From: Perkinsus chesapeaki ATCC PRA-425
Lineage: Eukaryota; Protista; Perkinsozoa
Length of the DNA stretch: 64,000 nucleotides
Assembly: GCA_013115145.1 (NCBI GenBank)
Contig: JAAPAO010000021.1
Coordinates: 1-64,000, forward strand
Reading direction: 5' to 3'
Shown: positions 26,524 through 49,743 of the stretch, piece by piece
Numbering within the stretch: the stretch's first letter is position 1
Layout of the letters: every line of letters starts with the position of its first letter
Notes under the pieces: model-generated
Told to the model about the DNA's origin: nothing
The model's database searches: none
The model's input: the letters and a program-made list of their open reading frames with translations, nothing else
Translations under genes and position numbers: made by a program

Positions 26524-28290
26524 ATGACATCTCCAAGCGCTACACAGGCCGCAGCAGCAGCCCTACAGGAGCAGCAGGAGCCTCCCCCTGCTGACGGTTT
26601 GGAACCCAATCACATACAGCTTATTCGGAACACCGCGCTGGGAGTGATACGAAATGGCCCCCAGTTCGCTGAGTGGCTGCAGACCAAACGTCGTGGTGAT
26701 AAACAGTATACTTTCCTCTTTAAGGGGTTGGGGCATGAGTACTATCAATGGTGCCTTGCCAATCCAGAAGAGTGTAAAAGGTTGGAGGATGCAGCACAGG
26801 AGGAGCAGCAGGCAGAGGCGGAGGATTCAGCTTCTGATTCCAGTAGCAGCAGCGGTTCCGAGTCGGATAGGAGCTCTAGGAGCAGAGATAGAAAGCGCAG
26901 GTCACGGTCTAGGGATCGCAGGCGACCTCGAAGCCGCTCGCGCAGACGCAGTCGGGGGCGATCGGATAGCAGACGTCGGCGCTATTCCCGGTCCCCTAGA
27001 TCGCGCAGGATGCGATCTCCTCGACCAACATCATGGCGAAGACGTGACGATGAAGGCAGTCGCTACAGAAGAAGGTCGAGGTCACGCAGATCTCGCTCGG
27101 GCAGAAGACGCTCGGGTTCTAGGAATAGACCAGCTGAGCGATCCAGCCAGTCTAGGGAGAGGTTCCTACAGAAAGCTCGGGAGTGGTCGGCGGAGCGAAG
27201 GAGAAGATCTGAGAGTAGAATTAGGAGGATGAAGGAGCGTGAGGAGGAAAGAGAGAAAGAAAGGGCAAGGGAGCTCCCGACTCAGGAGGCGAGGTTCCGA
27301 GACCGGGGCGGCGCCGGACAGCCGTGGTCAGGTTATCGTGGTAGAGATTATGAAAGGAGGCCCATGGGGAAGGGTATGGGCGGCCCGCGTAACTATTGGA
27401 ATCGCAGCCCGACTGCTAGGCAAGTAGCTGCCGCTCCAGAGCGTCCAAAGCCAGTGAAAGCGAATAAGATGTACGGATGGAGTGATGATGAGTATGTTGA
27501 AGGAGACAGCCCAAAATCTGACGACGAAAATAACGTTGAACATCTGCCTGCGAAGGATCATGTTGTACCTGATGAGGCGAAGGGATGGTATAAAGGATCG
27601 GACAATCGATGGAGGCGCGCAAGAATTAGGCCGACACCAGTCCTCACGGTCAAGCTGGATCATCGGGGTCAGGTGGTTCATGCCAAGAGTAGTGCCGAAC
27701 GGCTCGCTATGCTAAAATCGAAGCTGCTATCGGGAGGGAAGAACGAGGAAGAGGATGATAAAGGGGCGTCACCATCAGCAGCAGCAGCAGCAGACAAAGC
27801 GGATGACACTACTACCAAAAACGAAGCGGTTGTGCGAGAGCCCAGCGCGGGACGGGAGGCAGATACGGATGACACTCCAAGGGCCTCGAGGATGAAGGTG
27901 AGTGCAGAAAAACGCAAAGCTCGTAGCAGCAGCATAACCGTGGAGGAAAAGGATGATAAGGAGGAATCACGTAAGCGGAGGAGGGCGGAGAGTAACAGTG
28001 ATGGAGGAAAGAAGAGACCGCAGGTCGAGGATAAGGAGGTAAAGGACAAATCTAGGGAGAATAAGGCATCCTTGTCACCAAGAAAGAGGGTAAGCTATTG
28101 CGGGGAATCTTTCGGATTTGTGAGGGTAACTGAGACTGGCGTCGTGTTAAGCTACTAAACTTATGTAGCATCTCATGAAATGACAGTATTATCACTTATT
28201 GCTCCTTTACAGGCTTCCATGTCACCATCTGTAGAGGATCGACAGAAACAGCTTAAAGAGAAGCTATTAGGTTCAAAGCGGAGCAGGTAG
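26524..28290 (+). CDS. SURP (SWAP) domain, RS-rich putative splicing factor
   Basis: LIRNTALGVIRNGPQFAEWL...YTFLFKGLGHEYYQWCL matches the SURP module. Extensive RS dipeptides follow. A short last exon ends at TAG 28290. Confidence 0.75.
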
Positions 28291-30577: not shown

Positions 30578-31089
30578 ATGGCTAGGAAGATGGCCCTCGT
30601 GGCGCTGTGCGCCCTCGTGGTATCAGAGCTGTCAGGATGCAGCAGCTCCGATGGAACAACCACCACGGCTACTCGTAATAACTCGTCCATCGCTCAATTC
30701 TTAGAGTGTCATCTCTCTTCATCATTCACTGTTATTCCCTTTCAGCTATCACTACCGAAGTCACCACACATGCTGCTTTCCGCACAACTGCTGCACAGCA
30801 GACCACTACAAGTGGCACTACTACTACTACAACGGCGAGTACAGAGAACTGCATGAACGGCGACTACTATTGCCAAGTTATGTCCAACAACCCCAATAGC
30901 TTTTGTCGATACTATAGGGGCCTGCGGACTTGTCAAGGTTTCGACATTCCATGTAATTGCGATGATTTACCGCCTACTACGACGCCTCCACCGCCGACTA
31001 CCGCCTCTAATCAAACCAGCTCCACCGAGGAAAATTCCGATGTTCATACTAATAAGGCCGGGTCTAAAACCGGAGATGAACCCTTTTAG
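30578..31089 (+). CDS. Secreted Thr-rich (mucin-like) protein with 6-Cys module, copy 1
   Basis: Signal-like MARKMALVALCALVVSELSGC; phase-1 intron 30675-30745; poly-Thr stalks flank CMNGDYYC-x10-C-x8-C-x6-CNC. Confidence 0.7.
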
Positions 31090-31955: not shown

Positions 31956-32532
31956 ATGACTGCCTTCCCATGGCTGCTATCAGCCCTAGCCATCGCGGAA
32001 ATGGCATTGTACTTTTGTGGATGCGGCACACCTCCGACACGACGACCAACACCTGGTAGGGTTGCTCCCGTTACGCCAACGGCTCGCTCTCACTCTTCTG
32101 CCCCCCTTTCGATCGTTCTTCATTCCTTCAGAGATGAAGCGAACTACGCTGGAGCCCACGGCCTATACAACTGTATGGACACAAGCTGCGAAGACCACCA
32201 CGGCCCGAATTATGAAGGCCACCACGACCCCATTATCTACCAGAGAGCCTGGAAATTGTGCTTTCGGTGATATGGCGTGTCGTATGGCATCGTTGGACCT
32301 CGACGACCGATGTCTGTACTGGAAGACCGGTGAGTGTGAGAAACTTCCGGGGCAGACATGCTCCTGCATTCCACCTACCACTACGACTCTTAATATCGCA
32401 GTTCCTACAACGTCTACTGACTCCGCGGTCATTACTACCACAACAACAGCAACAATAACAAAGACGACAACAACGGCAAGGGCAACGAGGAACACTGTCC
32501 GCATACCAGTTTTTTCTCCTCCAGACCCTTGA
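31956..32532 (+). CDS. Secreted Thr-rich (mucin-like) protein with 6-Cys module, copy 2
   Basis: Signal-like MTAFPWLLSALAIAEMALYFCGC; phase-1 intron 32056-32131; Thr-rich stalks flank CAFGDMAC-x10-C-x7-C-x7-CSC. Confidence 0.7.
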
Positions 32533-32712: not shown

Positions 32713-35135
32713 TCAGCCTCCTTCCAGAGGATTGAGTCGGGCCATTCTGCACTCGTAAACGCAAGAGAGTAGAGGGAAACCATTATCTTTATCGCCGCTC
32801 CGGAATACTTCCAATGAGGAACTTGTGGAGGCTATCAGAGTATACATGGAATCGCGACTTCCTCGTGTCGGCACTGCGACGAACATCGTCTGGTACGTGC
32901 CAAAATCTGCCTGCCAGCGAGTTTTGCTCAACTCCGAGATGCTTCATGTCGGAGGCTCGCTTTTGGCTATGACAAACTCCATCACGGTGCAGAAATAAGT
33001 AGGGCAGCTTACAGGTGGCGAGCAAGAGCTACGTAAGGGGAGCAGCCTTCCACTTCTGACCACCAGTCAAACCAGCAAGAAACAGCGCGCACGTTATCCA
33101 TCAGCGTCGACACCTGCTGCAGGGTTGCAAATCGGCCAAATGATTAGACATATTATCCGAGTACGGTCTGATCGGGAACGCTCTTCAAAAATGAGTAAAG
33201 CTCTGAGATGCTCTGCTCCGGCCACCGTATGCTGAATTGGGACCAGTCAAGGAAGTCAGTGAAAGGAAGAATGAATTCATCAGAGAGGATTACTGGTACG
33301 CATCCTGAGGCCGTTAAGTATAATGCCCTGCCAGCTGCGGAAACTACTGACCGGCAAAGAAGGATTCGTAAAGGTGGTTAGTCCATGGAGATGTCCCAGC
33401 TGGGGCGATGCAGAACCGGGCTCGTCCCTGGGGAGCAGCTGTCACGTACATGAGCACGCAGACCCACCTTAAGCTCGAGATAGTTACTCACAAAACCGCC
33501 AACACTAACATCAGCATACTGAGTCAACTCTCGCACTAAGGTATTTCGAACTTCGCATCGTTCGTATCTGTGACGGTTTCGTAACCCCAAAGCCGTAGTT
33601 TTTTGAATAGTAGGACTCACGCGGAGTGGACACCACCATGGCGGCCGTGAAAGGTGACAAGCAGATCTCGCTCTTTGAGGGGCTTAGCGTGTTGCCTCAT
33701 GTACCTTTGTAAATTGTCTTGTTACTGTTCTATAGAAGTGCTTACATCGTTCGACCGCGGTCAGTGTGGCCAGGTATTATGATATCCTTCCAGGGGTTGT
33801 AGCATTGCTTAACATCCAGGTATTCAGCGACGGGCTCATTCCAAGTTGGGCATCTCCCTGGCACGAATGGCCTCACTGATTTGCTGACCGCCATGCTGCC
33901 CAACCCTCGACTAGTAAAAGTATTGAGGTCGACCTTATTATATCATAGAAGGAGAACTGGTATCTACCGTAGCCGGTCACGTTAACGCCGAGCCTGTCGC
34001 TTCTACGCCCCTTGGCCGTCAGCGAAGAGGAATATGTGATCGGCCCCATTCCGTCTTCGCCACCAGGGGGAGCTATGGAGCCACGCGAACAAAGGCTCGT
34101 AGACCTGCAATGCGCGAAAGCTCGCTTTTTTATGGTAACCACGTGTCCACGCAGCACCTCGGACGTCATGTCCTTGAGGCCCATGCCGTTCCGAGTCTGG
34201 ATACAGGTGCCATAGACAGGGACGTAGAACAGGTCTGCATCCTCGGGGTTCGATGTTCTATTAGAACTGAAGAGCCTTTTGCTCCGAGAGATGTTGAGTA
34301 TCGATCTACTTGCTTAGAAACCATTTGTGCACTAGGACCTCAACACCCCATTGCCCCATGCCGCACAGAAGAGGCGATTGTACTAGGCCCGCGAATATCT
34401 CATGCGGTGGCTCATACACGTAACTAGCTTGAAAGACGCATCGCCACAAGTTGGTCTAAAGTACACTGTGAGGCCATCGAGGCTGACAGGAGAAGGAGGT
34501 GCCAAGTCCAGCAGCGTGGGGTATGTGTAAGGAGTATCCATCTCCCAATCAGCAGTTAAGCTTTTCACGGCGAGGTCTCCTGCGTCGATGGCGGCCATTA
34601 CAATGTCCACCGCTCTCTGGTAACTGATGCAGGTGTCAGTGACCGACGTATTAGTTACTGAGTACAGCAATCTGGCTTCTTGCGTGCCACCGAATCTCGC
34701 CTCCAGAGCCAACAGAGCATTCAGCATGATGTCGGCGAGAGGCGCCGGGCACTTAGGGTTCTGCGGAAAGGCCGATGCTAGGTGAAGGGAAGCGTGTGTG
34801 TTACTTCCCCCGAGGCTGCCACCCGATCCAGGTAAGGCTCTACGCAGAGTTGATATATGGATGTAAGAAAATGCTGGGAAAGATTCAGATCCTCCCGCAT
34901 GTATCTAAGGTCCATGTGCTGGGCAAAGGCTTCGCGACCCTACGTGGCTTGGAACGCGGCAAACTCTCGGAAAAAGTCTTCCGTGAGACAGTCATCTATA
35001 CCGCCGGGGCACTGACAACCGGTAGTATCCGCTCGACGGATATGTCTCAGAGGAGCCTACTTCCAAGTGAGCATTATATTCAGAGAAGCCTTCAGCAAAC
35101 AATGGGACAAATATCAGGTACGCGTAGCGAGCCAT
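32713..35135 (-). CDS. Exostosin-family (GT47) glycosyltransferase with signal peptide, multi-exon
   Basis: Start MARYAYLIFVPLFAEG; spliced exons give QWGVEVLVHKWFLS, RTSNPEDADLFYVPVY, YNPWKDIIIPGH, WTNHLYESFFAG and CVPVILSDEFILPF..LDWSQFSIRWPE. Confidence 0.85.
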
Positions 35136-35213: not shown

Positions 35214-36719
35214 CTAACTATGAACTTGAGGTGCCCAGTCTGCTTCTGCGCGGACTAGAGCATGATCAGAAGGGAAGTGCAGGTTGGGCAAAGCACGTCC
35301 TGGACTATCTCCATTATCAATCGAGCTTTCTCTTATTCGCATACCGCCACCGGTGAGAAGGATGTAGTCCTTTGGGTTCTCGTCCAGAACATTCACCTTA
35401 GCTGCTTGAGCTTGCAGCGGAGTTCGTCGGTTGCTTGTAGTCGTCCTGGCATCCGTGTGTACTAGGCCTAGAGAGGAAACCTCCTTGAGGAAGTCCGCGG
35501 CCACTAGGTTTCCAACGGTAGCGGTAGCGTAGCAATTGGCGTCCATACCGACCATCAGTGGAAGATCAAGACTTGTTAGGAGCTTCAAGGTGGGTACAGT
35601 GAGACGGCCATTAGTGTCACCATGGAAACTCGCGAGCAGGAGCGAGTGACCGTCGGAATCTTCGACTATGCAGGTAGTCAAATCACCGGAAGCGAGACCA
35701 CGGTGGGTGGCCTCGCTCGATAGACCAACCCGTACTTTTTCAGATGCCTCGGTATCAACTTCAAAGCCACATCCTCTCCGAACCAGGATAAGAGAGCGCT
35801 GCTTTGACATGCCCGAATATGGGTCCTCTAGCAACTGATATTCCTCAGCCTTTTGTGATGAGAGTATAGCCTCTTGTATATCCCTGGACACCTCCTGGAG
35901 CATTATCACATCGGCAGAGCCAAGCAGTCTCGTATCGATGTAGCTCACTAATTGCTGAGGACGCTGAACCACCGACGCAATGCGGTTTTCTCGGACGGTC
36001 CGCCAGTCCACAAAAGCCTTGTCAGAAACGGCTATGAGTAAGGCATCAAAGATAGCGAGCCCTACAATCGACATAGCACGGTAGTTGTCCTTATAGGGCG
36101 TCTCGACTTTATATTTTTCCACATCGAGCGGGGGTATCGGAGTTCCGCTCATAAACCGTATCCACCGGTCGAACCAGTCCTTGGTAAGAGAAAGGTCTCC
36201 GGAATAACAAGAGATCATTGAGGGTCGGCATTGGCCATGGTAATCTACGTTTGTGAAGCGATCCGGCCAGGAGATGATTCGACTGTTCCCGATGGTCTTG
36301 CTGGTGAGGAATCCTGACCAAATCTTTTGCGCCCTCAAAAAGTCGTAAGCGTCGGCGACCGATTGAGCAGATGGTAGCGATAATGTTTGATGAGTATCAA
36401 GTAGACTAGACTTCATATTGAAAGGTAACGTGTCCTCAAGAAAGTCGCCTACGGACACTCCGGCAGCCTCAAGAGCCTCCGCTGTATCTTGGAATCCACC
36501 GAGGAAGTCCGTAAAGCGATGATCGGAGTCATCCCAGAACTCCAAGGGATTGGTCTGGACTGAGCCAACATTCCACGTAGCTATCTTGAGTGGAGAGAAG
36601 ATAGGCTTCTCGGTGAAGCACTGGTTACTGGTAGTGTGCATGTTCTCGGACAGGAGCAACTTACGACCAAAAACAGACGAAAGGAGGCTTTCGAGGCGTT
36701 TCATGAACAAAACCTGCAT
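35214..36719 (-). CDS. Endonuclease/exonuclease/phosphatase (EEP) superfamily hydrolase, intronless
   Basis: All core EEP motifs in order: IATWNV, DVIMLQEV, ASFHG, VGMDAN, PKDYIL, FPSDH. First in-frame ATG is at 36719 (the ORF track starts at a GTG at 36794). Confidence 0.85.
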   Translation of the reverse strand: MQVLFMKRLESLLSSVFGRKLLLSENMHTTSNQCFTEKPIFSPLKIATWNVGSVQTNPLEFWDDSDHRFTDFLGGFQDTAEALEAAGVSVGDFLEDTLPFNMKSSLLDTHQTLSLPSAQSVADAYDFLRAQKIWSGFLTSKTIGNSRIISWPDRFTNVDYHGQCRPSMISCYSGDLSLTKDWFDRWIRFMSGTPIPPLDVEKYKVETPYKDNYRAMSIVGLAIFDALLIAVSDKAFVDWRTVRENRIASVVQRPQQLVSYIDTRLLGSADVIMLQEVSRDIQEAILSSQKAEEYQLLEDPYSGMSKQRSLILVRRGCGFEVDTEASEKVRVGLSSEATHRGLASGDLTTCIVEDSDGHSLLLASFHGDTNGRLTVPTLKLLTSLDLPLMVGMDANCYATATVGNLVAADFLKEVSSLGLVHTDARTTTSNRRTPLQAQAAKVNVLDENPKDYILLTGGGMRIRESSIDNGDSPGRALPNLHFPSDHALVRAEADWAPQVHS

Positions 36720-37009
36720 CAAGAGTGTGACGACGATCGCGGAAGTACGCGAGACCGTGACAAGATAACTGTCACCTGTCCTGTAACCGAACACTTAGAC
36801 AAGATTGACTAAACCACTGGAAATCACTCAACAGCTCTCCTTAATGTAATGTAATATTACTGAATTGCGTTGCTGGCGAATGCTTTCGTCGTCTTATGCT
36901 ACAATGAAGTGAAACAGAAATATGCACAAAGGCGAAACTTCCCGTGGATCTGACGAAACGTTAAAGTGCTACTACCGAGAGCACTATCGTCATCGCTGAC
37001 CAGATTAAA

Positions 37010-39867
37010 TCATACAATTCCCGAAGTGGGCCCTGGAATAAAGTCCATACTCTCTGTATCATCAGAATCGCTCATGACACTCGACAGCTGAGATGCCGAA
37101 GCAACATCATCGCTGCTGTCTGTAGTGTAGTTGCTTGATCTCTCGTTGCCGTCTTCCTCGCCTTCATAGCCCATACGATATGCTCTGCTGGATCGAGATT
37201 CGTGTCGGCTGCGCTCCGATAAGCGGAACGAGGACACACTCGTATTATTGGGCACCGGCAAAAAGAGCGAACCTTGGCTCGCCATTGAGAGCCACTCCTC
37301 CGGTTCTGTCTTGAGTGAGGGAGCAGTGTTGCTACCCATCGTCCCAACCTGTGACGACATCGTCACCACTGGCACTCGATGAAGTCCGTCTAGAACATCT
37401 CTGACATAAATTCGACATGGGTCCTGGCTCACAGGCTTTGGTCGCCGATGCATCACTCGGCCCTCGCCACACCAATAAGACCCAAGACGCCCAATCAAGG
37501 ATAGGATAACACCGATTAAGCGGGGCAATCCTATTCCCCAAGCGGTAACGTCAATAGCAGCAAGAGCTACTTGGCTGGCTGCATCCTGTCCAGGAGGGTA
37601 ACGATTATGTCCGGGATGAGCCAGATAGTAGCTGTAGGCGACAACGGGAGCAATGTTAACCATTGTACCAATGACAACCAGCCAGGATCTAATCTCCATA
37701 CGTCTAGCTTGTGTTTCTGTGGTAGCAGGATCATCCGGATATGCACCAGGAGTGCCCCAAGGCAGTATATCGCTTTGACATATTGCGTATAGGCCAGAGC
37801 CAAGTACTAGTGTTGTGGGCAAGAGACAGAACCATTGGAACCAACAAAGTAGAAAGACAACCATGTCATCAATGTTACCCGAAGCCAATGGTGTCAACAC
37901 GTAAGGTGCGATAAGTATGCACCAGGCTACCAGGTTAACTCTCGGCTCGTAAAGTATAACACGTAGCATGAAATATGCAATAGCAACGACCCATAAAAAT
38001 CCAACAGCTATAGCCGCAAACATATACGCATACTGTATACCTCTGGAGAGATCTCGGCAACCAATGGAGAGCTGTACAAGGATTGTAAAGAGTGCAGTAA
38101 GGATAATTGCCAGAGGAAGCCTGGCCCACGGCACTAGGATCGATAAAGGTGCAATTATAACCATTGTAAGTACACCGATAGCAACAACGCTCATAACCCA
38201 AGTTGCTAGTCTTGGAATGATAATAAAGGGAAAAAATAATAATCCTCTCCACGAACAGGAATATCGTCTGAAACCGATATATAGATTCATCAAAGACATA
38301 AAGAAGGTGGTAGATGAGCGCCGTGTGAGCTCAATCAGGTTACAGAAAGTGAATGCCTCTGCAGATGCCGAGACGGACTTTTGGCTCAACCGAGAGGCTT
38401 GTGCCCGCGCCCCGATAACCATTTCCACTCTACAGCCACGAGCAGCAGCACGGGGTAACATCCGATCATCAGATATGTACATGTTACAGCGCAGGGGGCC
38501 GTCCGGGCCTTTACTGCCAGTTCGAGTGAGCGACGCAAAATAACGATCTGTCTGAACTCGGTCTAATCGTAAAGCACACATGGCCACGTTAACCCGTGTC
38601 GAATTGCCACCGAGCGCAGTCTCCGAAGCACCGTCTATCAGGTCTTCGATCCTTCTTTGCATCAAGAAGGTGGCTAGGGCTGGGTTCAAGGCCACAATCT
38701 GGGGGGACGGGAATACCGGGATCTGGTGATTGCTGTCGGATAGGGTGTCACCGGAGACAATCGCAACCTTATCGAGATTAAGAAAGTCACTAAATTGTAG
38801 TAGGGCCGAGGCTTCGGGACAAATACCACAATCGAGCAGGACGACTTGGAGATCTTTGGAGTCGCTGACCGTAGCAAAGTGGCGTGCTATACCTTCAAGA
38901 GCCCACAAATGACACTCGGGCCTCCGGCTTATCGTATGACCTGACAGAACTACAGTGGAACATACTCAGGTTGATACGGTCACCTACTGGCAGAACTGAT
39001 CCCTGCAAATTCCTTTACACAAACCATAATCTGCAAAGGAGGAAAGGATTCACCTCCTAACTGAGCAACCGTTTCAAAGATATGCATATAGACCTTCTGC
39101 CCATGGTCGACCGTCAACGAGTCTGCCCGTCTCGCTTCTCGATCTTCCGCAAAGAGCCTTTTGCAGCTGTCAAGGGCAGCACCGTCTTCCCACAGAGATT
39201 CGACGTTGTAATACAACCCCATATGTTGTAGAGCGGTGAGCAGACTGCGCGGTCCGTCGGGATTCTCGATACTGAACTCACGGCGACCGTCTATCACAGC
39301 ACAAATGACAAAGTCATTCCAAACAAAACTGCCTCGATCGCAGCAATCTTTAATGCACTCCATCAGAGAGAATAGGGTCGAAGTGAACCCTATAATACTA
39401 GAGCCTTGAATATAGCTTGCAATAGTTATAGTTATCATAATTTTAACGTGTTGCTCGGGGTTGGAGACAAAGCGTAATCGGAAACTTCCCTCCTTCACCT
39501 TGCCATGAAAGAACCTCCTATAGAAGTCTGTGTCGAACATATTAGCGATCGGCCTTGCCTCCGTGATACCGAGTTCTCGATAATCTACATTATAGTGCCG
39601 AAGTAACTCCTCAGCACGGACAGTCACAGGGGTGTACCGTAAGAATATCAAAGGGTTTTTAGGGGGGCCACCATCAAAGTCGATGTCGATGTAAGATCGA
39701 TAATCCGGAAGGGTTGGATGAATAGCCGGGTGACACCTTAGTGATGAAGTCGACTCGGCAGTCTCGTCACAACAAGGAGCTGACGATAAAGGAAACCTCG
39801 AACAGGCCTCCGAGTCCTCAGACTCTGGCTCTGGCTCGAAGTTGGCCATTTCATTAACTAAAAACAT
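37010..39867 (-). CDS. Chitin synthase-like (GT2) protein, degenerate catalytic motifs, copy 1 (2 exons)
   Basis: Exon 1 has RYTPVT, CAVIDGR, MGLY, HIFET, LQIMVCVKE. Phase-1 intron 38941-38987. Exon 2 has CHLW, LLDCG, NMYISDDRML, multiple TM helices and PWGTPG. Confidence 0.8.
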
Positions 39868-39967
39868 GTTCAGTAGGGAATTCAGAAAGGAAAAACTAAA
39901 CACTTGTATTTAAAGTTAAAAAAGTTATTTATTGAGTTAAGCAATGTGTTGCATAGTAGAAGTATAA

Positions 39968-42756
39968 TTACTCCGAGAAAACGTCATCTCGGAAAGAAGA
40001 GGAAGAAGCCGACTTCTTCCTCGGACACGGCACAAAGACCGCGTCATGTCTCTCGATATCATCAACACTGTCCTCACTTTCAGAGTAGGCGAAAGCTTCC
40101 TTCGAGGAACTCGGTATCGCAGCACCACCTACGGTGGCCGTGATCTCAGCTGCTCGCCGGCCTCCTATAATACCGAGGATGCTCCTGTTTAGCGGCTGAG
40201 TGATGACTGTCCCATGAATGGTGATAAGTATCATACCCTTTTCCGTCTCATAAAAAGAATAAGGGCCTCTCATCAAGGACGGTATGCTATTCGAAGGACT
40301 ACTTGCCGCCGTCATTGCCGTTGAAATCTCAGCAACCCATCTAGGGACTCTATTCCTCCTGGAGCCCAACGTCTCACAGATACGCTTTAGTGCGAACAGG
40401 GTCGTTCCGATTATGCGAGTTAAGGTGCGCAAGACTGTGTCAAGTAAGACTACCCAGGCCACAGCTTGTGCTAGAAATGACACCCGTAGAGTAAAGACGT
40501 TGCTGCCACCATCGCCGCTAGTAGACCCTTCATCTGATGCCGTTCCCACACCAGCCCAAGTAAGAGAAAATACAATGGGCAAAAGGTTCGCAATGCCCCA
40601 CAAGGCAGCTAGCCAAGATCGGACTTCCATTCGCTTGGCTAAAGTATCGGAGGTCCTTGGGTCCACGGTGCTCGGACCGGGCGTGCCCCATGGCAAGACA
40701 CCAGACATACAGATACAGTATATAGAAGAGCCCAGCACTGTGGTTGTCGGGTATAGAAGCAACCACTGTATAGCACATACAGGAAGCACTTTGAGAACGA
40801 AGCGGAGATCCCCATAGAGAACAATGCTCCACAGGTAGGAACAGATATGGGCAATAAAAGCCCCAACAAAGAGATTCGCAGAAGTCGAGACGAGTGCAAT
40901 AATGAGCTTTACTATTCCAACGGTCCAGAGTACTCCAAATACTAGTGAACTCGCTTGGAAAACGACGAGAACTTGGGGGGTTAAGCCCCCTACTCCTACA
41001 CACAGCTGGAACATCACTACTGATAGTACAAGAAGGATGTATGCTACAGGCACTTGGCCACTACTGTATAGTAGCTCACTCCCTATCAACATAACTAGAT
41101 TCATAATCAACAGTGACAACGATGAAAGACCAACATCAACAAAGCGGTATAACAGAAGAGCAACCCGGAAGGGTAGGTAGCAATCGCAGCGCATGTTGTT
41201 CCAAGCAATGAGCAACCTCCGAAGGGCCTGGAATATCGTCAACACGTCAACTCTGGATGAGTCCATGAGATCTTTATACGAGAAGTCTCTTGCTAGTTTG
41301 GACATAGTCTGTCTTTGCGTAGGATGGCATACCACCTTGGCGTTAGGAAGAAGCTCGCATCTCCAACCGCGATGGACAGATCCCAGCATCGCTCCGCCGT
41401 CACATAAATAAAAGTTAGGCGTCAACGGAGCCATCATAGGAGAGTTACCGGCCCGGGTTAGTATAGCGAAGTAGCGCTCGACGTCGATAACTCCGAGACG
41501 AAACCCGCACAATGAGCCTTCCATTGTTGACAGGAAGCCGCCGAGTCCTGTTTCCATGGCGGCATCGGCCACAGCACGCAAGCGCTGCCGAACCAACCAT
41601 GCGCATAAAAACGGGTGCAGCAGCATGTCCCAAACAGTTGGATAATCAAGCAGCTGGTAGGGGGCAGTTGCCCATGTATCGGCGGAGACGATACCGACTT
41701 TTGGCCGGCTGAGCCGAGTGACCATAACGGAGAGGCAGTCTGGGGCAGGGCACATACCACAATCCATAGCGATTATTCTCAAGCTACCGTCGGGCTCGCC
41801 CTGGGAATTCGAGCGAGTAGATGAGGACATATTAGTGATGTGTTGTGCGATGCCCACAATACCCCACAAATGGCAAGATAACCGTGAAGTAGCGAGAGAG
41901 CCTGAAAAGAACGAATACGCTCAGCGACAAGCTCACGTACCTTACCGGCTAGTCCTTTGTCTGGGCACTCCTTCACACAAAGCGCCAGTCTAACCGGAGG
42001 AAAGCGTCCACCTTGCATCATAATAGTGCCCTCATAAAGATGCACATGAACAGGGTAACCCCCGTCGGCAGTATAACGTCCACCACGACATGCCTGGCGA
42101 TCTTCCGTAGTTATCCTTCCAGCTCTTTCCATTTCTCCTCCGTGTTCCCACAACTCCTCAGGCTTGAAGTAAATACCCATCCGCTCGAGCTCCCCCAACA
42201 CCGATGTCGGACTCTCCTTCTCGAATTCTTCAAATGCTGCTCGTCCGTTAACAACAACGCATAGCAAGGCCTGGTCCCACCTGACTCGGCCTGATTCCTC
42301 CAAATTGGCAAGGTTCTCCATCACTGCCCGCAAAGTGACGCGGAAGCCCTCCGCCGAGGATCCCAGCATACCAATACCGACCGATACCAAAATGAGCAGC
42401 TCGACTTTTTCATGTAGATTGTCCACAAACTTTATACGAAATGGTGGCATGCCTGACAGCCTGTCTCTGTAAAGATTGGGGTAGTGATAACTATCGAAGA
42501 GATCTTCAATTCCTCTGGTATCCATACATAAAGCATCATTGTGGACGTTATAATGCAATATTAGCTCCTCTTGGCTGATGGTTATTGGGGTGTACCGAAC
42601 CACCCGACTGTAGCTCAGAATCGGAGGCCGCAAATCCAGGTAAGAACGAAATTTCGGGTTGGCCGCATCGATCCGAGGATGGCGCGCCTCTGGAAGCTCG
42701 CAGAAAACAGCCTGCTGGCCGCCGCAGATCTCAGCCCATCGCTCCGCTCGATGCAT
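39968..42756 (-). CDS. Chitin synthase-like (GT2) protein, degenerate catalytic motifs, copy 2 (2 exons)
   Basis: Exon 1 has RYTPIT, CVVVNGR, MGIY, HLYEG, LALCVKE. Phase-1 intron 41902-41945. Exon 2 has CHLW, AMDCG, NFYLCDGG, TM helices and PWGTPG. Confidence 0.8.
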
Positions 42757-43043
42757 ATATTGCAACCTGACATGGGGCTCAATGACGATTACCAAAGAAG
42801 ATAACACAAGCCTTCGGAGATGGTAATACGAAATGTGGTATTAGGGGTGAATGGTTAGGGAGGAGTATAAGACGGTGATGGTATGGTACACTCAACAACA
42901 GCTCGGTTATGGTGGCCCTGATCATATACACAGGGATTGTCTATTAGACAACAAATATTCACACTAATAGTATAAGGCTCGGGATACAACCGAGGCGAAC
43001 ATAACAGACAGTTAAAGCAACAACACAATCAACAACATCATCA

Positions 43044-45695
43044 TCAGATTGGCGGGAAGAGCCCTTTTGAGGGAGATGGAACAAAGAAATCATCGTCATC
43101 GACAACCCATACAGATCCTCCTTCGAGGCCTCCATTGGCGTCGACCAGCGAGTCGCCACCAGACTCGTCGGCACAATAGAGTGTGCCGTTTCCAGAGCTG
43201 CTGGTGACCTTCTCGGGATTCTTGCTCTTGACCACGTCGAGGTCCATAACAACGTCATACTCGCTGAGGCCGGAAATCTCGGGAAGAGACGGTTTACCTT
43301 CTACAACAGACTTGGTTACACTACCGAATGTTCGCAAGGCTCGAGTGAAAGCGTATATCAGGATTCCCACTGTACGCGGAATAAAGAGCACGGCAAAGAG
43401 GTAGACAACGCAACCGAAGAATATGTACTCGTTGGCAGTGCTGATGTGCTTTAGAGTGCCGCTCTGCGAAGCGTTGCCCAACACTAGAGTAAAGGCAACT
43501 ATAGGAAGAAGATTGGCTGCCAACCAAGCACTAGTCAGCCAAGATCTGGTCTCCATACGACGGGCTTGTGTATCTGCAGTCTCGAGGGCCAATGGATCAG
43601 GGCCTGCAGTGCCCCATGGTAGAATGTCCGCCATACACACACTGTACAAAGCGGAGCCTACTACGGTAGTGGCGGGTAGGGTAAAGAACCACTGTACAAC
43701 ACATAACGGGAGCAACCAGAAGATATCCAGATCTCCCATAAAGATCAACGATGCAAATGGCGACGTACTTACAGTGAAGAACGCGGCAGATACGAGAGGA
43801 TGACAACCATGCGCCAACACGCAGGAGAAACGGTACATACCGAGAGCCCAGAGAACTCCTAGAAGAATGCAAAGGACTCTACAGAATATGACAACACCTC
43901 TGGAGAGAGTAGCGCTGCCACAGAGCAGTTGGGACATAACAATCGATGCTATAAGGATTACACAGGCAAAGGGAAGTTGGAGGTACTCGTTAAAGTTGCT
44001 AAGGCCGACGATCATTACAAAATCAAGAGCAACGAGTGTGAAAATATCAGCTATCAAACTGCCGAAACGATATATAAATAAAAGAATAAAGTTGCCGTAG
44101 GCCGTCCAATTAGGCTCACTTCGGCCGAGTAGTGTCCGGATCGATAATGCCATAACAAATGGGGACCATGTGTCGAACCTAGAGTGCTCTATAAGATCAG
44201 TGAATGTAAAGGATTGGGCATTCCTCTCGAGGACCTCCTTCTTCATGGCTTTTGGATTGTCCTTAGCCGAGTAGAGCAAAACAACCGAACAGGAGCCATG
44301 GGCCGAGCTGGCCATCATACCACCATCGTTCAGAAGAATGTTTGCCAATAAGGGGTTCATACAGTTATTATTACCACCAAATGTAAGCTGCGTAAAGTAA
44401 GTGTCGGTATCAACCCTATCAAGCCTTAAAGCACACATGGCACAGTTAACATTGCTAAGATTCCCTCCCAGCCCAGTATCCATAGCACCATCGCTCGCAA
44501 GACGTATCTTTTGCCGAAGTAACCAAGACGCCAAGCTCGGATTAGAGAGTAGGATACGCAACGGAGGCGTGCAAGGAATCTGATGGTCTGCCGTGACCAG
44601 GCTGTTACCCCCTACTACAGCCACTCCTTCTTCTTGAAGCTTTTTATACATCAAACCTAGACAGTTGTCATCGGGACATACACCACAGTCCAACAGGGCG
44701 ACTTTAACATCATTTCTAGACGAAGTGACATTAGCAAAGTGACGGGCTATTCCCTCTATAGCCCATAAATGGCATGCCATCCGTGAGGTAACAATCGGAT
44801 CTAAAACTACAAGTACGATCTATTGCAAATCCCCATTGTTATTACCAGCTGAGCTCTGATCTGGATACTCCTTAACACACAGTACCAGCTGCAGCGGTGG
44901 GAACTCATTACTCTTCATTTGTATAGTACTTTCAAACAAGTGGGCAAATACATCTTGCCCTTTATCAACAGTAAGCCGTCCTTCCTTGAATGCTTTACGG
45001 TCCTCCGGATATATCCTAGCGGCCCTATCAAGCTCTCCATCAGGTTCCCACAGCTCCTCCACATTCATATAAACACCCATGCGTTGAAGCTCGCTTAGAA
45101 AGGACGGCTCATAGTCTTCTTTAGAGGTTTCAAACTCGTTACGGCCATCCACTACCACACAGACCGCGATCTGATCCCAGGCAATCAGACCAGCATCGCA
45201 CATTCTTTTCACGTTGCGCATAACGCATATAAGAGTTGACAGAAATCCGGTAGGTGTGGCGCCTTGGATGCCTCGACCGACCGATATGGCTATGGTGTAC
45301 TTGACCGTCTGGGAAACAGACTCAACAAATCGGAGATGAAAGGGCCTTAAAGAGCTCCAACCACCGAAGAAGTTCCAGTAGAAATCGGTATCAAACATGT
45401 CCTCTATGCCCCGAATGTCAATACCCGAATCAGAGTAATCAACATTGGAGTGACGTATGAGCTCCTCATCTCGGATGGTGACGGGCGTGTACCGTACAAA
45501 GCGACGATTGAGACGCTTTTTCGGACAGAAATCAATATAAGAACGATATTTGGGATTATAAGGGTTAATAAAGGGATGGGTGCATACCACTGAATGACTG
45601 TGGCTATTTACAACATTACTGCGAGCAGCAGCGTCAGTAGCAGCAGCAGCTGCGGTAACCGTCTCAGGTAGGCTATCGCCGCGACGGTAACGCAT
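43044..45695 (-). CDS. Chitin synthase-like (GT2) protein, degenerate catalytic motifs, copy 3 (2 exons)
   Basis: Exon 1 has RYTPVT, CVVVDGR, MGVY, HLFES, LQLVLCVKE. Phase-1 intron 44801-44845. Exon 2 has CHLW, LLDCG, NILLNDGG, TM helices and PWGTAG. Confidence 0.8.
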
Positions 45696-48057: not shown

Positions 48058-49743
48058 TCAGTCCTTGGCATCTTGGATACCTTTATTGCAAATTTCAAAG
48101 ACACAGTCGCCCTCGGGTAAGCTAGGCGAGTCAATGATCTTCATGATCCTCTGTTCGCCTCTTCCTTTTCGAAGAGCGATACGAGTTGTACCTTCACAGT
48201 GATTTTAACTGACGGAAGCACCTCTTACTGTAATGGGCCAATACGTGGCCTCCTATAGGTTTTGGGGGATTAGCGGCAAAGGACATTGCCGCTGCTGGGT
48301 CCGCCATTACTTGGTTGGTGATGACCACTGCTAAGTTATACCTACAATCTCTTACATCTATCATCAAAAAGCATACATAGTAATAGCGACTTGGTATGCG
48401 ATATTGCAGTTCCTTGTTCCCTAATTCCGTCCAGTTTTCATCCGAATGACGAACGACTCGCGTCCCTATTTGATACTCATTGGCGGGCGACGGTTGTATA
48501 ATTGTATAGAACCCCAGGCGGTCTCTATGGCTAGTGAAACTAAGCCCTTACTCTTCACTTAGCTTCTGCAGTCGGCTCATAACCCGAGATAGGAGCTGTT
48601 GGCGCTCAGCCAGATCTCCACGACCAGTGAAGTCAACTCTGAATGGGCCCATAATACCTGATGACACTCTACCCAGAAATGATGAAAAAGGTCGCCTACT
48701 ATCGACCACAAGGAGAGCGTATTTCTCCTCGGCCATTTTTGCGGCAACACACAGCAGTAATTGCACAAGGTGCTCTGAGTTGTAGCATCTAGCATATATG
48801 ATGTTATCCAGGACCTGCTGAGGGTCCACCCCATAAGCCTGAGCAATCTGAGTTATCCTATCGGGTCGGAAGGTGTTCTCAGTGTCAATGTAGCAGACTT
48901 TCCCATTCGCCCCACCATACGACTGAGGCATCTGCGCGATAACGCTAAGTGAATGGCAGAGCTGAGTCTTTCCGCATCGGAACTCTCCGAAGAACTCGGT
49001 GATACTGCAGCTCTCGACGCCACCACCCAACAGCTGGTCAACTTTGGAGGAGCCAGTGGAAAGACGAAACCGTTTGCGGCATTTGGTGCGGACGAATTCG
49101 CTGCCCGTGATGAAGCCCGCACTAGTGAGCTTTCTGGCAGCCTCTTGTATCTTTTCAACCTTCTGCTCGGACAGCCCCTTTATGCTGCATAGATCCCTCT
49201 TTGTTGTGTATATAACCGCCATTGCTGTATTAAGCCCAGCTTCCTTCAGTTTACGGAGATCTGCCGCATTTATACCTACACCACCTCAAAGCTGAGTTCG
49301 ACTATCTACCATACCGGCATCTTGGAGCTTCTCTATCTCTTGGAAATCATCATCAACTTCTTCATCAATATCCGAAGCCATGTCCATAGCGACCTGCCCA
49401 AACAATGCCAATGGCCTCTCTAGACCAGCTTACATCGCCGCTCGCCTGTGCCCCGGTAGGTGATGGAGCACCTATGCAAATGGCTATAGCAAGATCAAGT
49501 GGGGGGTAGGGTACTCTCAACAGTGGCCGAGGCTGCAGATGCTGACGGTGCACTAGCCTGAGCCTTCTCCTTCCGAGGCCTTCCTTTACTCTTTGGCTTC
49601 TCGGCAGCTGGCTGCTTTGAAGGGCTTGCCATGGATGCCACCGCCTGAGCGTTAGATAGAGAAAGTGTCGGTATGAGAATTCTTACCGCTGCGAAGTCAT
49701 CCTGTGTCGCAGTAGGTGACACTTGAGCTGCTATAGCGGCCAT
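48058..49743 (-). CDS. DMC1: Meiotic recombinase DMC1 with N-terminal extension, multi-exon
   Basis: Walker [10 protein letters not shown]; DMC1-type [15 protein letters not shown] and [11 protein letters not shown] (rather than RAD51 RTDYSGRGELSARQ); PIGGHVLAH. Upstream exons splice in frame from ATG 49743. Confidence 0.9.

Follow-up and report, generated by a model that had tools for sequence, protein, structure and literature searches.

The 64,000-nucleotide window analysed here (positions 1 to 64,000, forward strand, of contig JAAPAO010000021.1 from Perkinsus chesapeaki ATCC PRA-425, a parasite of clams) contains three adjacent genes, hereafter called A, B and C, whose products are related to chitin synthases (CHS) and lack several of the residues on which CHS depend. 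Gene A (43044..45695, minus strand) consists of exon 1 (45695-44846), a 45-nt intron (44845-44801) and exon 2 (44800-43044), and encodes 868 aa. Gene B (39968..42756, minus strand), whose first ATG is at 42756, consists of exon 1 (42756-41946), a 44-nt intron (41945-41902) and exon 2 (41901-39968), and encodes 914 aa. Gene C (37010..39849, minus strand), with its ATG at 39849, consists of exon 1 (39849-38988), a 47-nt intron (38987-38941) and exon 2 (38940-37010), and encodes 930 aa. According to the listing of open reading frames (ORFs) and the reading of the junctions, the genes follow one another head to tail, 287 nt separating A from B and 118 nt separating B from C, a tight spacing that makes co-expression plausible. 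The three introns are all of the GT..AG type, in phase 1, and lie between the CVKE and CHLW motifs; the spliced frames are open throughout, with 0 internal stops in a script check. The original prediction, made from the same DNA, had announced exactly this layout, three head-to-tail minus-strand genes free of stops and frameshifts, each interrupted by one short phase-1 intron before CHLW. The spliced product of A is identical to an NCBI protein (P0001) named 'Chitin synthase, class 2 [Perkinsus chesapeaki]', and that of B is identical to P0005 / KAF4677071.1.

The three proteins are genuinely homologous to division-1 chitin synthases, and their derivation from CHS is borne out by Pfam, by a family profile and by Foldseek. 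In Pfam scans, the score of A against Chitin_synth_1 was 42.7 bits, above the gathering score of 25 bits, while B (15.3 bits) and the P. olseni orthologue of C, P0004, which was scanned in place of C (19.6 bits), fell below it; exon 1 of C itself gave 19.7 bits. Neither Chitin_synth_2 nor Glyco_trans_2_3, the models of the catalytic half, matched A, B or P0004 at E <= 1. A canonical P. olseni CHS (P0009) matches Chitin_synth_1 together with these two models, the latter at 94.6 and 56.2 bits, respectively. A phmmer search of the PDB sequences with the single sequence of A returned nothing at E <= 1. The family profile, on the other hand, matched CaChs2 (7stl) with an E value of 5.7e-9 and PsChs1 (7wjm) with an E value of 3e-6, the alignment spanning the region from the glycosyltransferase (GT) core to the WGT loop. 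An AlphaFold2 (AF2) model of A (predicted local distance difference test score, pLDDT, 72.6; predicted TM-score, pTM, 0.77) corroborates the sequence homology: the top 20 Foldseek matches were all CHS, with E values from 1e-19 to 5e-16, and hyaluronan and cellulose synthases came far behind. The three proteins keep the CHS architecture, namely an N-terminal RYTP domain, a GT-A domain, interfacial helices, a block of transmembrane (TM) helices and the WGT loop. The fold and the domain order are those of the solved CHS, ScChs1 (7xs6, 8k3p), CaChs2 and PsChs1, with a target-normalised TM-score of up to 0.73 in Foldseek, but sequence identity amounts to 13-17% only, and A, B and C have other residues at the uracil, donor, acceptor and gate positions.

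The state of the nine CHS motifs was established by aligning nine sequences, the three paralogues from each of three genomes, with canonical CHS; motif roles were taken from PMC12653383 and PMC10409773. Besides P. chesapeaki, the genomes are that of P. olseni (locus L004) and a Perkinsus-like third genome, the Logan assembly of SRR12548988 (L008 and L009), and the orthologues were rebuilt from both. All coordinates that follow are on the minus strand. Motif 1 (TMYNE), located at 45261-45287 in A (ISVGRGIQG), 42361-42387 in B (VSVGIGMLG) and 39403-39429 in C (ITIASYIQG), is lost in all nine sequences, as had been predicted: the core reads SVGRG in A, SVG(I/S)G in B and TIASY in C, and the uracil-stacking Tyr and the Asn-Glu pair are gone. 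The DGR of motif 2 is kept in A and C and is NGR in B in all three species, so that, of the scaffold elements originally listed as retained, RYTP, CVKE, (L/M)DCG and LPWGT stand, and DG fails in B only. Motif 3 (GKLDSHLW) reads SR..CHLW in the three paralogues, Lys being replaced by Arg and Ser by Cys, with HLW retained. In motif 4 (L(L)D(V/A)GT; A 44673-44696, LLDCGVCP; B 41747-41770; C 38816-38839), which has become DCG(V/M/I)CP, the Asp and the Gly are invariant (nine of nine), the Thr is replaced by Val, Met or Ile, and two invariant, family-specific Cys flank the Asp. Motif 5 (QxFEY) is lost everywhere, with WLLRQ in A, WL(V/F)RQ in B and FLMQR in C.

Motif 6 (VLPGAFSAYR; A 44424-44453, B 41498-41527, C 38567-38596) has become NVNCAMCALR in A, MEGSLCGFR in B and RVNVAMCALR in C, in agreement with the AMCALR and SLCGFR read earlier at PGAFSAYR; across the nine sequences VLPGA reads NVNCA, (T/M)MEGS or RVNVA, the gate Pro-Gly has disappeared, and the Arg and one Cys are invariant features of the segment. 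Motif 7 (YLAEDR) is LLNDGG in A (44319-44336), YLCDGG in B (41393-41410) and YISDDR in C (38462-38479). The predicted readings of EDR as DDR, CDG and NDG thus correspond to C, B and A in the alignment with canonical CHS: the general-base Asp is present in all nine, the Glu is replaced by Asn or Ser (A), Cys or Ser (B) or Asp (C), and the Arg survives in C only. Motif 8 (QRRRW) is EHSRF in A (44175-44189), DSSRV in B (41249-41263) and ELTRR in C (38318-38332), or, across the nine, (E/Q)xSRF, (D/E)SS(R/S)(V/L) and (E/V)x(T/S)RR. Its replacement had been correctly recognised, the letters quoted being out of register by one residue; in the register of the profile the third Arg is kept in eight of nine sequences (P. 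olseni B lacks it), and the Gln position and the Trp are replaced, the latter by Phe in A. Motif 9 (SWGTKG; A 43602-43622, LPWGTAG; B 40676-40696; C 37745-37765) reads LPWGT(A/P)G with invariant W, G and T, and runs into an invariant loop, T..T.A.RME.RSW, to form the block most conserved between the paralogues. Altogether, 134 alignment columns are invariant across the family.

Two additional features were seen at the altered positions. Following strand beta-1, A and B carry V-G-x-G-x-x-G in place of TMYNE in all three species, and C does not; in the AF2 model of A, the GxGxxG loop joins a strand (133-139) to a helix (148-167) with what would be the geometry of a Rossmann phosphate-binding loop, a resemblance that may be coincidental. 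Also, four Cys and one His, shared by all nine sequences and not present at these places in canonical CHS, lie in or beside motifs 3, 4 and 6 (CHLW, DCGxCP and (M/L)C(A/G)(L/F)R); they are C293, H294, C322, C325 and C406 in A (positions 44763-44786, 44673-44696 and 44424-44453), with equivalents in B and C. These residues are a candidate metal or redox site that could occupy the place of the donor pocket.

What the motif residues do is known from ScChs1, in which T453, M454, Y455, E457 and K578 contact the uracil, Q756 and R759 the phosphates, and Y654, R718, W760 and the VLPGA segment the acceptor, D717 being the base (PMC10409773). The N456A/E457A, P675L/T, G676L, R718L and W760A changes each disrupt ScChs1 function in vivo (PMC10409773). 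A, B and C combine the equivalents of several of these changes; it is therefore very unlikely that they synthesise chitin by the known mechanism. Because of this, the idea that they are ordinary chitin synthases, as their public names have it, is very improbable. The NCBI and UniRef names speak for it, as does the fact that A clears the Pfam Chitin_synth_1 cut-off. But they lack five to six of the nine CHS motifs, ScChs1 individually needs several of the residues so lost (PMC10409773), B and the C orthologue are below the same cut-off, and none of A, B and the C orthologue matches Chitin_synth_2. Conversely, the general base and the DxG Asp remain in all nine sequences and the diphosphate Arg in eight, so the proteins are not necessarily catalytically dead. 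The qualification of the genes as 'catalytically degenerate' in the original prediction therefore holds insofar as residues required in CHS are lost, and is overstated as a label. As for their being pseudoenzymes, the fold is retained, selection acts on the genes, and residues of the gate and of substrate binding have gone, while the general base and the metal-site Asp persist; the genes may encode pseudoenzymes or enzymes of new specificity.

Intact copies of A, B and C, each with the same phase-1 intron, exist in P. olseni and in the third genome. Between P. chesapeaki and P. olseni, the orthologues are 80% (A), 57% (B) and 73% (C) identical, compared with 88% for canonical CHS; overall, identity is 56-83% between orthologues and 28-38% between paralogues (29-36% among the three genes of the triplet), and B is the fastest-evolving copy. 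In codon alignments, nonsynonymous divergence (dN) is 0.10-0.33 and synonymous divergence (dS) is saturated (1.4 to >3 by maximum likelihood), which yields an omega of about 0.02-0.12; given this saturation, the NG86 and YN00 methods were unusable (negative dS), maximum likelihood was used, and omega is meaningful only as being far below 1. The genes are thus under strong purifying selection rather than dead, as had been proposed. Decaying pseudogenes are ruled out by the intact orthologues with their conserved intron and by the low omega, and the chance that the triplet consists of such pseudogenes or of annotation artefacts is negligible: the loss of catalytic motifs and the outcome of the sequencing runs (see below) would fit this idea, but nine of nine ORFs are intact in three genomes, dN is far below the saturated dS, and the invariant columns mentioned above are hardly what decay would leave.

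The tree of the nine sequences has the form (C,(A,B)), with supports of 98-100. Its internal branches measure 0.46-0.91 changes per column, versus 0.06-0.38 for the species-level ends, which places the duplications long before the split between P. chesapeaki and P. olseni. None of the paralogues has motif 1, 5 or 6 or the Trp of motif 8, a loss that most parsimoniously predates the triplication. Conservation is uneven along the proteins. In the comparison of P. chesapeaki with P. olseni, identity in A, B and C, respectively, is 86, 69 and 84% for the GT-A core, 92, 66 and 89% for the WGT loop, and 74, 29 and 65% for TM5-6, which are, together with the tails, the parts least conserved between orthologues. 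The suggestion that the proteins might serve merely as polymer channels is disfavoured by this pattern, since the cytosolic GT-A core is better conserved than the TM helices.

The family is essentially restricted to Perkinsus, as the original prediction of a lineage-specific family implied. When 1.84 billion representative proteins were searched exhaustively with a profile, the only members recovered were the clusters of A, B and C from Perkinsus, one B fragment of the third genome and a distant relative, P0017; the next matches were canonical perkinsid CHS, at 126-214 bits. Two word-indexed protein searches, the second made with an alignment of the three exon-2 products, gave the same four proteins. 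The P. chesapeaki assembly contains exactly five CHS-like loci, namely the triplet plus one canonical gene on each of contigs C3091 and C7, so that the canonical CHS postulated as possible partners do exist in the genome. The C3091 CHS, P0094, has all nine motifs; its paralogue on C7 has TMYQE and LAEDRIL. A six-frame search of the P. chesapeaki genome with Chitin_synth_2 gave no match, which is taken as a false negative caused by introns since P0094 exists. The C7 gene has no intron at the CVKE/CHLW site, and this intron therefore marks the triplet sub-family. The canonical perkinsid CHS (P0094, P0009 and the C7 product) resemble A, B and C in having the N-terminal RYTP domain, the GT-A core, the TM block and a WGT loop followed by R-x-E-(F/x)-R, and they share with them an insertion between motifs 2 and 3 (R-I-x-x-x-D-R and T-V-D-x-G-x-x-V-x-x-H-x-F-E); they differ in keeping all nine motifs. 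The public 1694-aa model of P0094 (C3091, L006) looks chimeric, with a signal peptide and a Ser/Thr-rich region, another domain, a complete CHS and, in its C-terminal part, two RRM-like stretches.

P0017, a 660-aa protein from JGI metagenome 3300081888 (L007, 4854-6836), groups as sister to the A/B/C clade with a support of 100, though on a long branch. It shares with A, B and C the N-terminal motif, RYTP, VVNGR, LTVDHGQKV.H.FES and a C-terminal F-I-P-x-P. By contrast, its gene is intronless, its contig has a GC content of 38%, and in its second half no similarity to the catalytic half or the TM region could be detected. What P0017 retains is thus limited to the N-terminal half and the tail, and its existence makes the family older than the genus Perkinsus.

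The reading I favour, with a probability of roughly 0.45, is that A, B and C do not polymerise and serve as non-redundant subunits of a CHS-like membrane complex. In this scheme, an ancestor that was already altered would have undergone tandem duplication. Residues that differ between the paralogues and are conserved within each stand in place of three elements, namely the TMYNE uridine pocket, the Glu of EDR that binds the donor sugar, and the acceptor and gate parts QxFEY, VLPGA and the Trp of QRRRW. The products would no longer polymerise chitin in the known way, and each would be a distinct subunit that scaffolds, regulates or localises the synthesis of a wall polysaccharide, and that may still bind a nucleotide or a phosphate ligand. 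Since CHS are dimers, A, B and C could assemble with one another, with the two canonical CHS, or with both. This reading is preferred because the uracil, donor and acceptor sites are lost together, because the replacements are specific to each paralogue and conserved, and because the three genes are retained in tandem, 1:1:1, with minimal spacing; also because conservation peaks in the GT core and the WGT loop, and the distant relative P0017 keeps non-catalytic parts only. As regards a possible contact between subunits, the swapping loop of ScChs1, located between TM helices 4 and 5 (TMH4 and TMH5), touches the GT domain of the partner protomer. The WGT loop of A, B and C is predicted by the AF2 model to sit between the corresponding helices, a match of position only, and the loop that follows WGT is much shorter than the 56-residue swapping loop of ScChs1.

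Several observations weigh against this proposal. With the general-base Asp and the DxG Asp invariant in the nine sequences and the motif-8 Arg present in eight, the picture would be the same for an active enzyme whose substrate has changed. Motif 8 of A is an (E/Q)xxRF form of QxxRW, which reads QNSRF in P. olseni. Catalysis would explain the strong conservation of the GT domain no less well than would the binding of a ligand or a partner. The alignment behind the AF2 model consists mostly of canonical CHS, so that the fold match corroborates the sequence homology and is not independent of it. Finally, two sequencing runs, whose status as RNA is uncertain, contained one 503-nt and one 160-nt contig, both within exon 2 of A (44155-44657); over the stretch searched in these runs, 38900-44899, nothing was found on B or on the covered part of C, and no splice joint was seen.

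Directly downstream of C lies a gene on the minus strand, from about 36794 to 33100, in which DUF8234 is combined with Exostosin_GT47. Its first exon (35214-36794) encodes 526 aa, and its Exostosin_GT47 exons lie at 33180-34280. DUF8234 is carried by the P. olseni orthologue, and endonuclease/exonuclease/phosphatase-like (EEP-type) motifs, FHGDTNG, MDANCY and FPSDH, are recognisable by eye; a Pfam scan of the 526-aa first-exon ORF gave no match. P. olseni has this gene beside its triplet as well, in synteny; next to A in the third genome, only the DUF8234 part was seen.

This neighbour bears on the main alternative, possible though less likely than the favoured reading, according to which A, B and C are active GT2 glycosyltransferases with a new chemistry. 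The minimal catalytic set would have been kept, the uridine/GlcNAc donor pocket and the acceptor pocket would have been rebuilt, and the enzymes would build or lengthen a wall glycan other than chitin, perhaps with three different specificities, along with the neighbouring GT47. The invariance of D321 and D442 (A numbering), the near-invariance of the third Arg and the (E/Q)xxRF of A would then reflect catalysis, as would the position of the GT-A core among the most constrained regions, with only about 20% of the GT-region columns invariant; conservation of the replaced motif positions within each paralogue and the synteny of the adjoining DUF8234 and Exostosin_GT47 gene in P. olseni speak for it as well. 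Against such an activity stand the loss of the uridine motif TMYNE in all three paralogues, an Asn in place of the DGR Asp in B from three species and a P. olseni B devoid of the motif-8 Arg. P0017, which matches the N-terminal half and the C-terminal tail and not the catalytic half, also speaks against it. The Trp of QxxRW, replaced by Val or Leu in B and by Arg in C, is kept in the known processive GT2 synthases.

A related scheme, which I regard as unlikely, is that A, B and C form an obligate hetero-oligomeric machine derived from CHS, with a rebuilt active site to which the invariant Cys and His residues and the GxGxxG loop of A and B would belong; the machine would either make a Perkinsus wall polymer not known before or sense a nucleotide or metal ligand so as to gate the canonical synthases. 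If true, such a machine would constitute a new functional class among processive GT2 synthases. The plant cellulose synthases CESA1, CESA3 and CESA6, which form hetero-oligomers, offer a partial analogy: they too are three anciently diverged, non-redundant GT2 paralogues that have been retained. They are, however, catalytically active, and all keep D, DxD, TED and QxxRW, while A, B and C do not have the full motif set.

The C-terminal end of the proteins bears on another alternative. Each closes on an acidic run followed by F-x-P-x-P (A 43068-43088, FFVPSPS; B 40019-40039; C 37025-37045), of which F856, P858 and P860 (A numbering) are invariant in the nine sequences. The motif is present in P0017, and the C-terminal sequences of the canonical perkinsid CHS P0094 and P0009 have no such acidic F-x-P-x-P tail. 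Together with the fact that the whole family, P0017 included, shares the N-terminal domain and the first half of the GT-A core, this invariant tail would suit a moonlighting membrane role, as a transporter or channel, a receptor, or a trafficking cargo or adaptor acting through the tail, apart from glycan synthesis and from CHS complexes. I consider this unlikely: the TM helices are the least conserved structured part of the proteins, glycan-related genes surround the locus, and the WGT loop and the active-site Asp residues have been kept.

Among the other neighbours, Rad51 and Tim10 are found upstream of the triplet, a Rad51 exon being located at 48548-49222 on the minus strand (E 7e-69), and P. 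olseni shows the same order. In the third genome, A is on L008 1-11887 (in the order Rad51, Tim10-like, A, DUF8234) and B and C are on L009 1-13266 (Tim10, B, C); this split could be a real rearrangement, a difference between haplotypes or an assembly artefact at the shared Tim10 flank. On the plus strand, ORFs at 30578-31089 and 32017-32532 have many Thr runs, a start that resembles a signal peptide and C-terminal parts with spaced Cys, and look like mucin-type secreted or wall proteins. Further off, a Surp-module protein is encoded at 26524-28158 (plus strand).

The public name 'chitin synthase, class 2' is very probably wrong as regards function. A literature search yielded no paper describing the wall-building machinery of Perkinsus, no relevant data on chitin in the Perkinsus wall, and no paper joining the terms 'pseudoenzyme', 'glycosyltransferase' and 'chitin synthase'. 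A conserved trio of CHS-derived proteins whose active site has been remodelled amounts to a rare natural experiment on the fates open to the processive GT2 scaffold, be it a regulatory or pseudoenzymatic subunit or a new specificity. Perkinsus species are major parasites of shellfish, and both their transmission and their diagnosis depend centrally on thick-walled stages. The A, B and C family, which the host lacks and which hardly occurs outside Perkinsus, is a candidate for a parasite-specific target.

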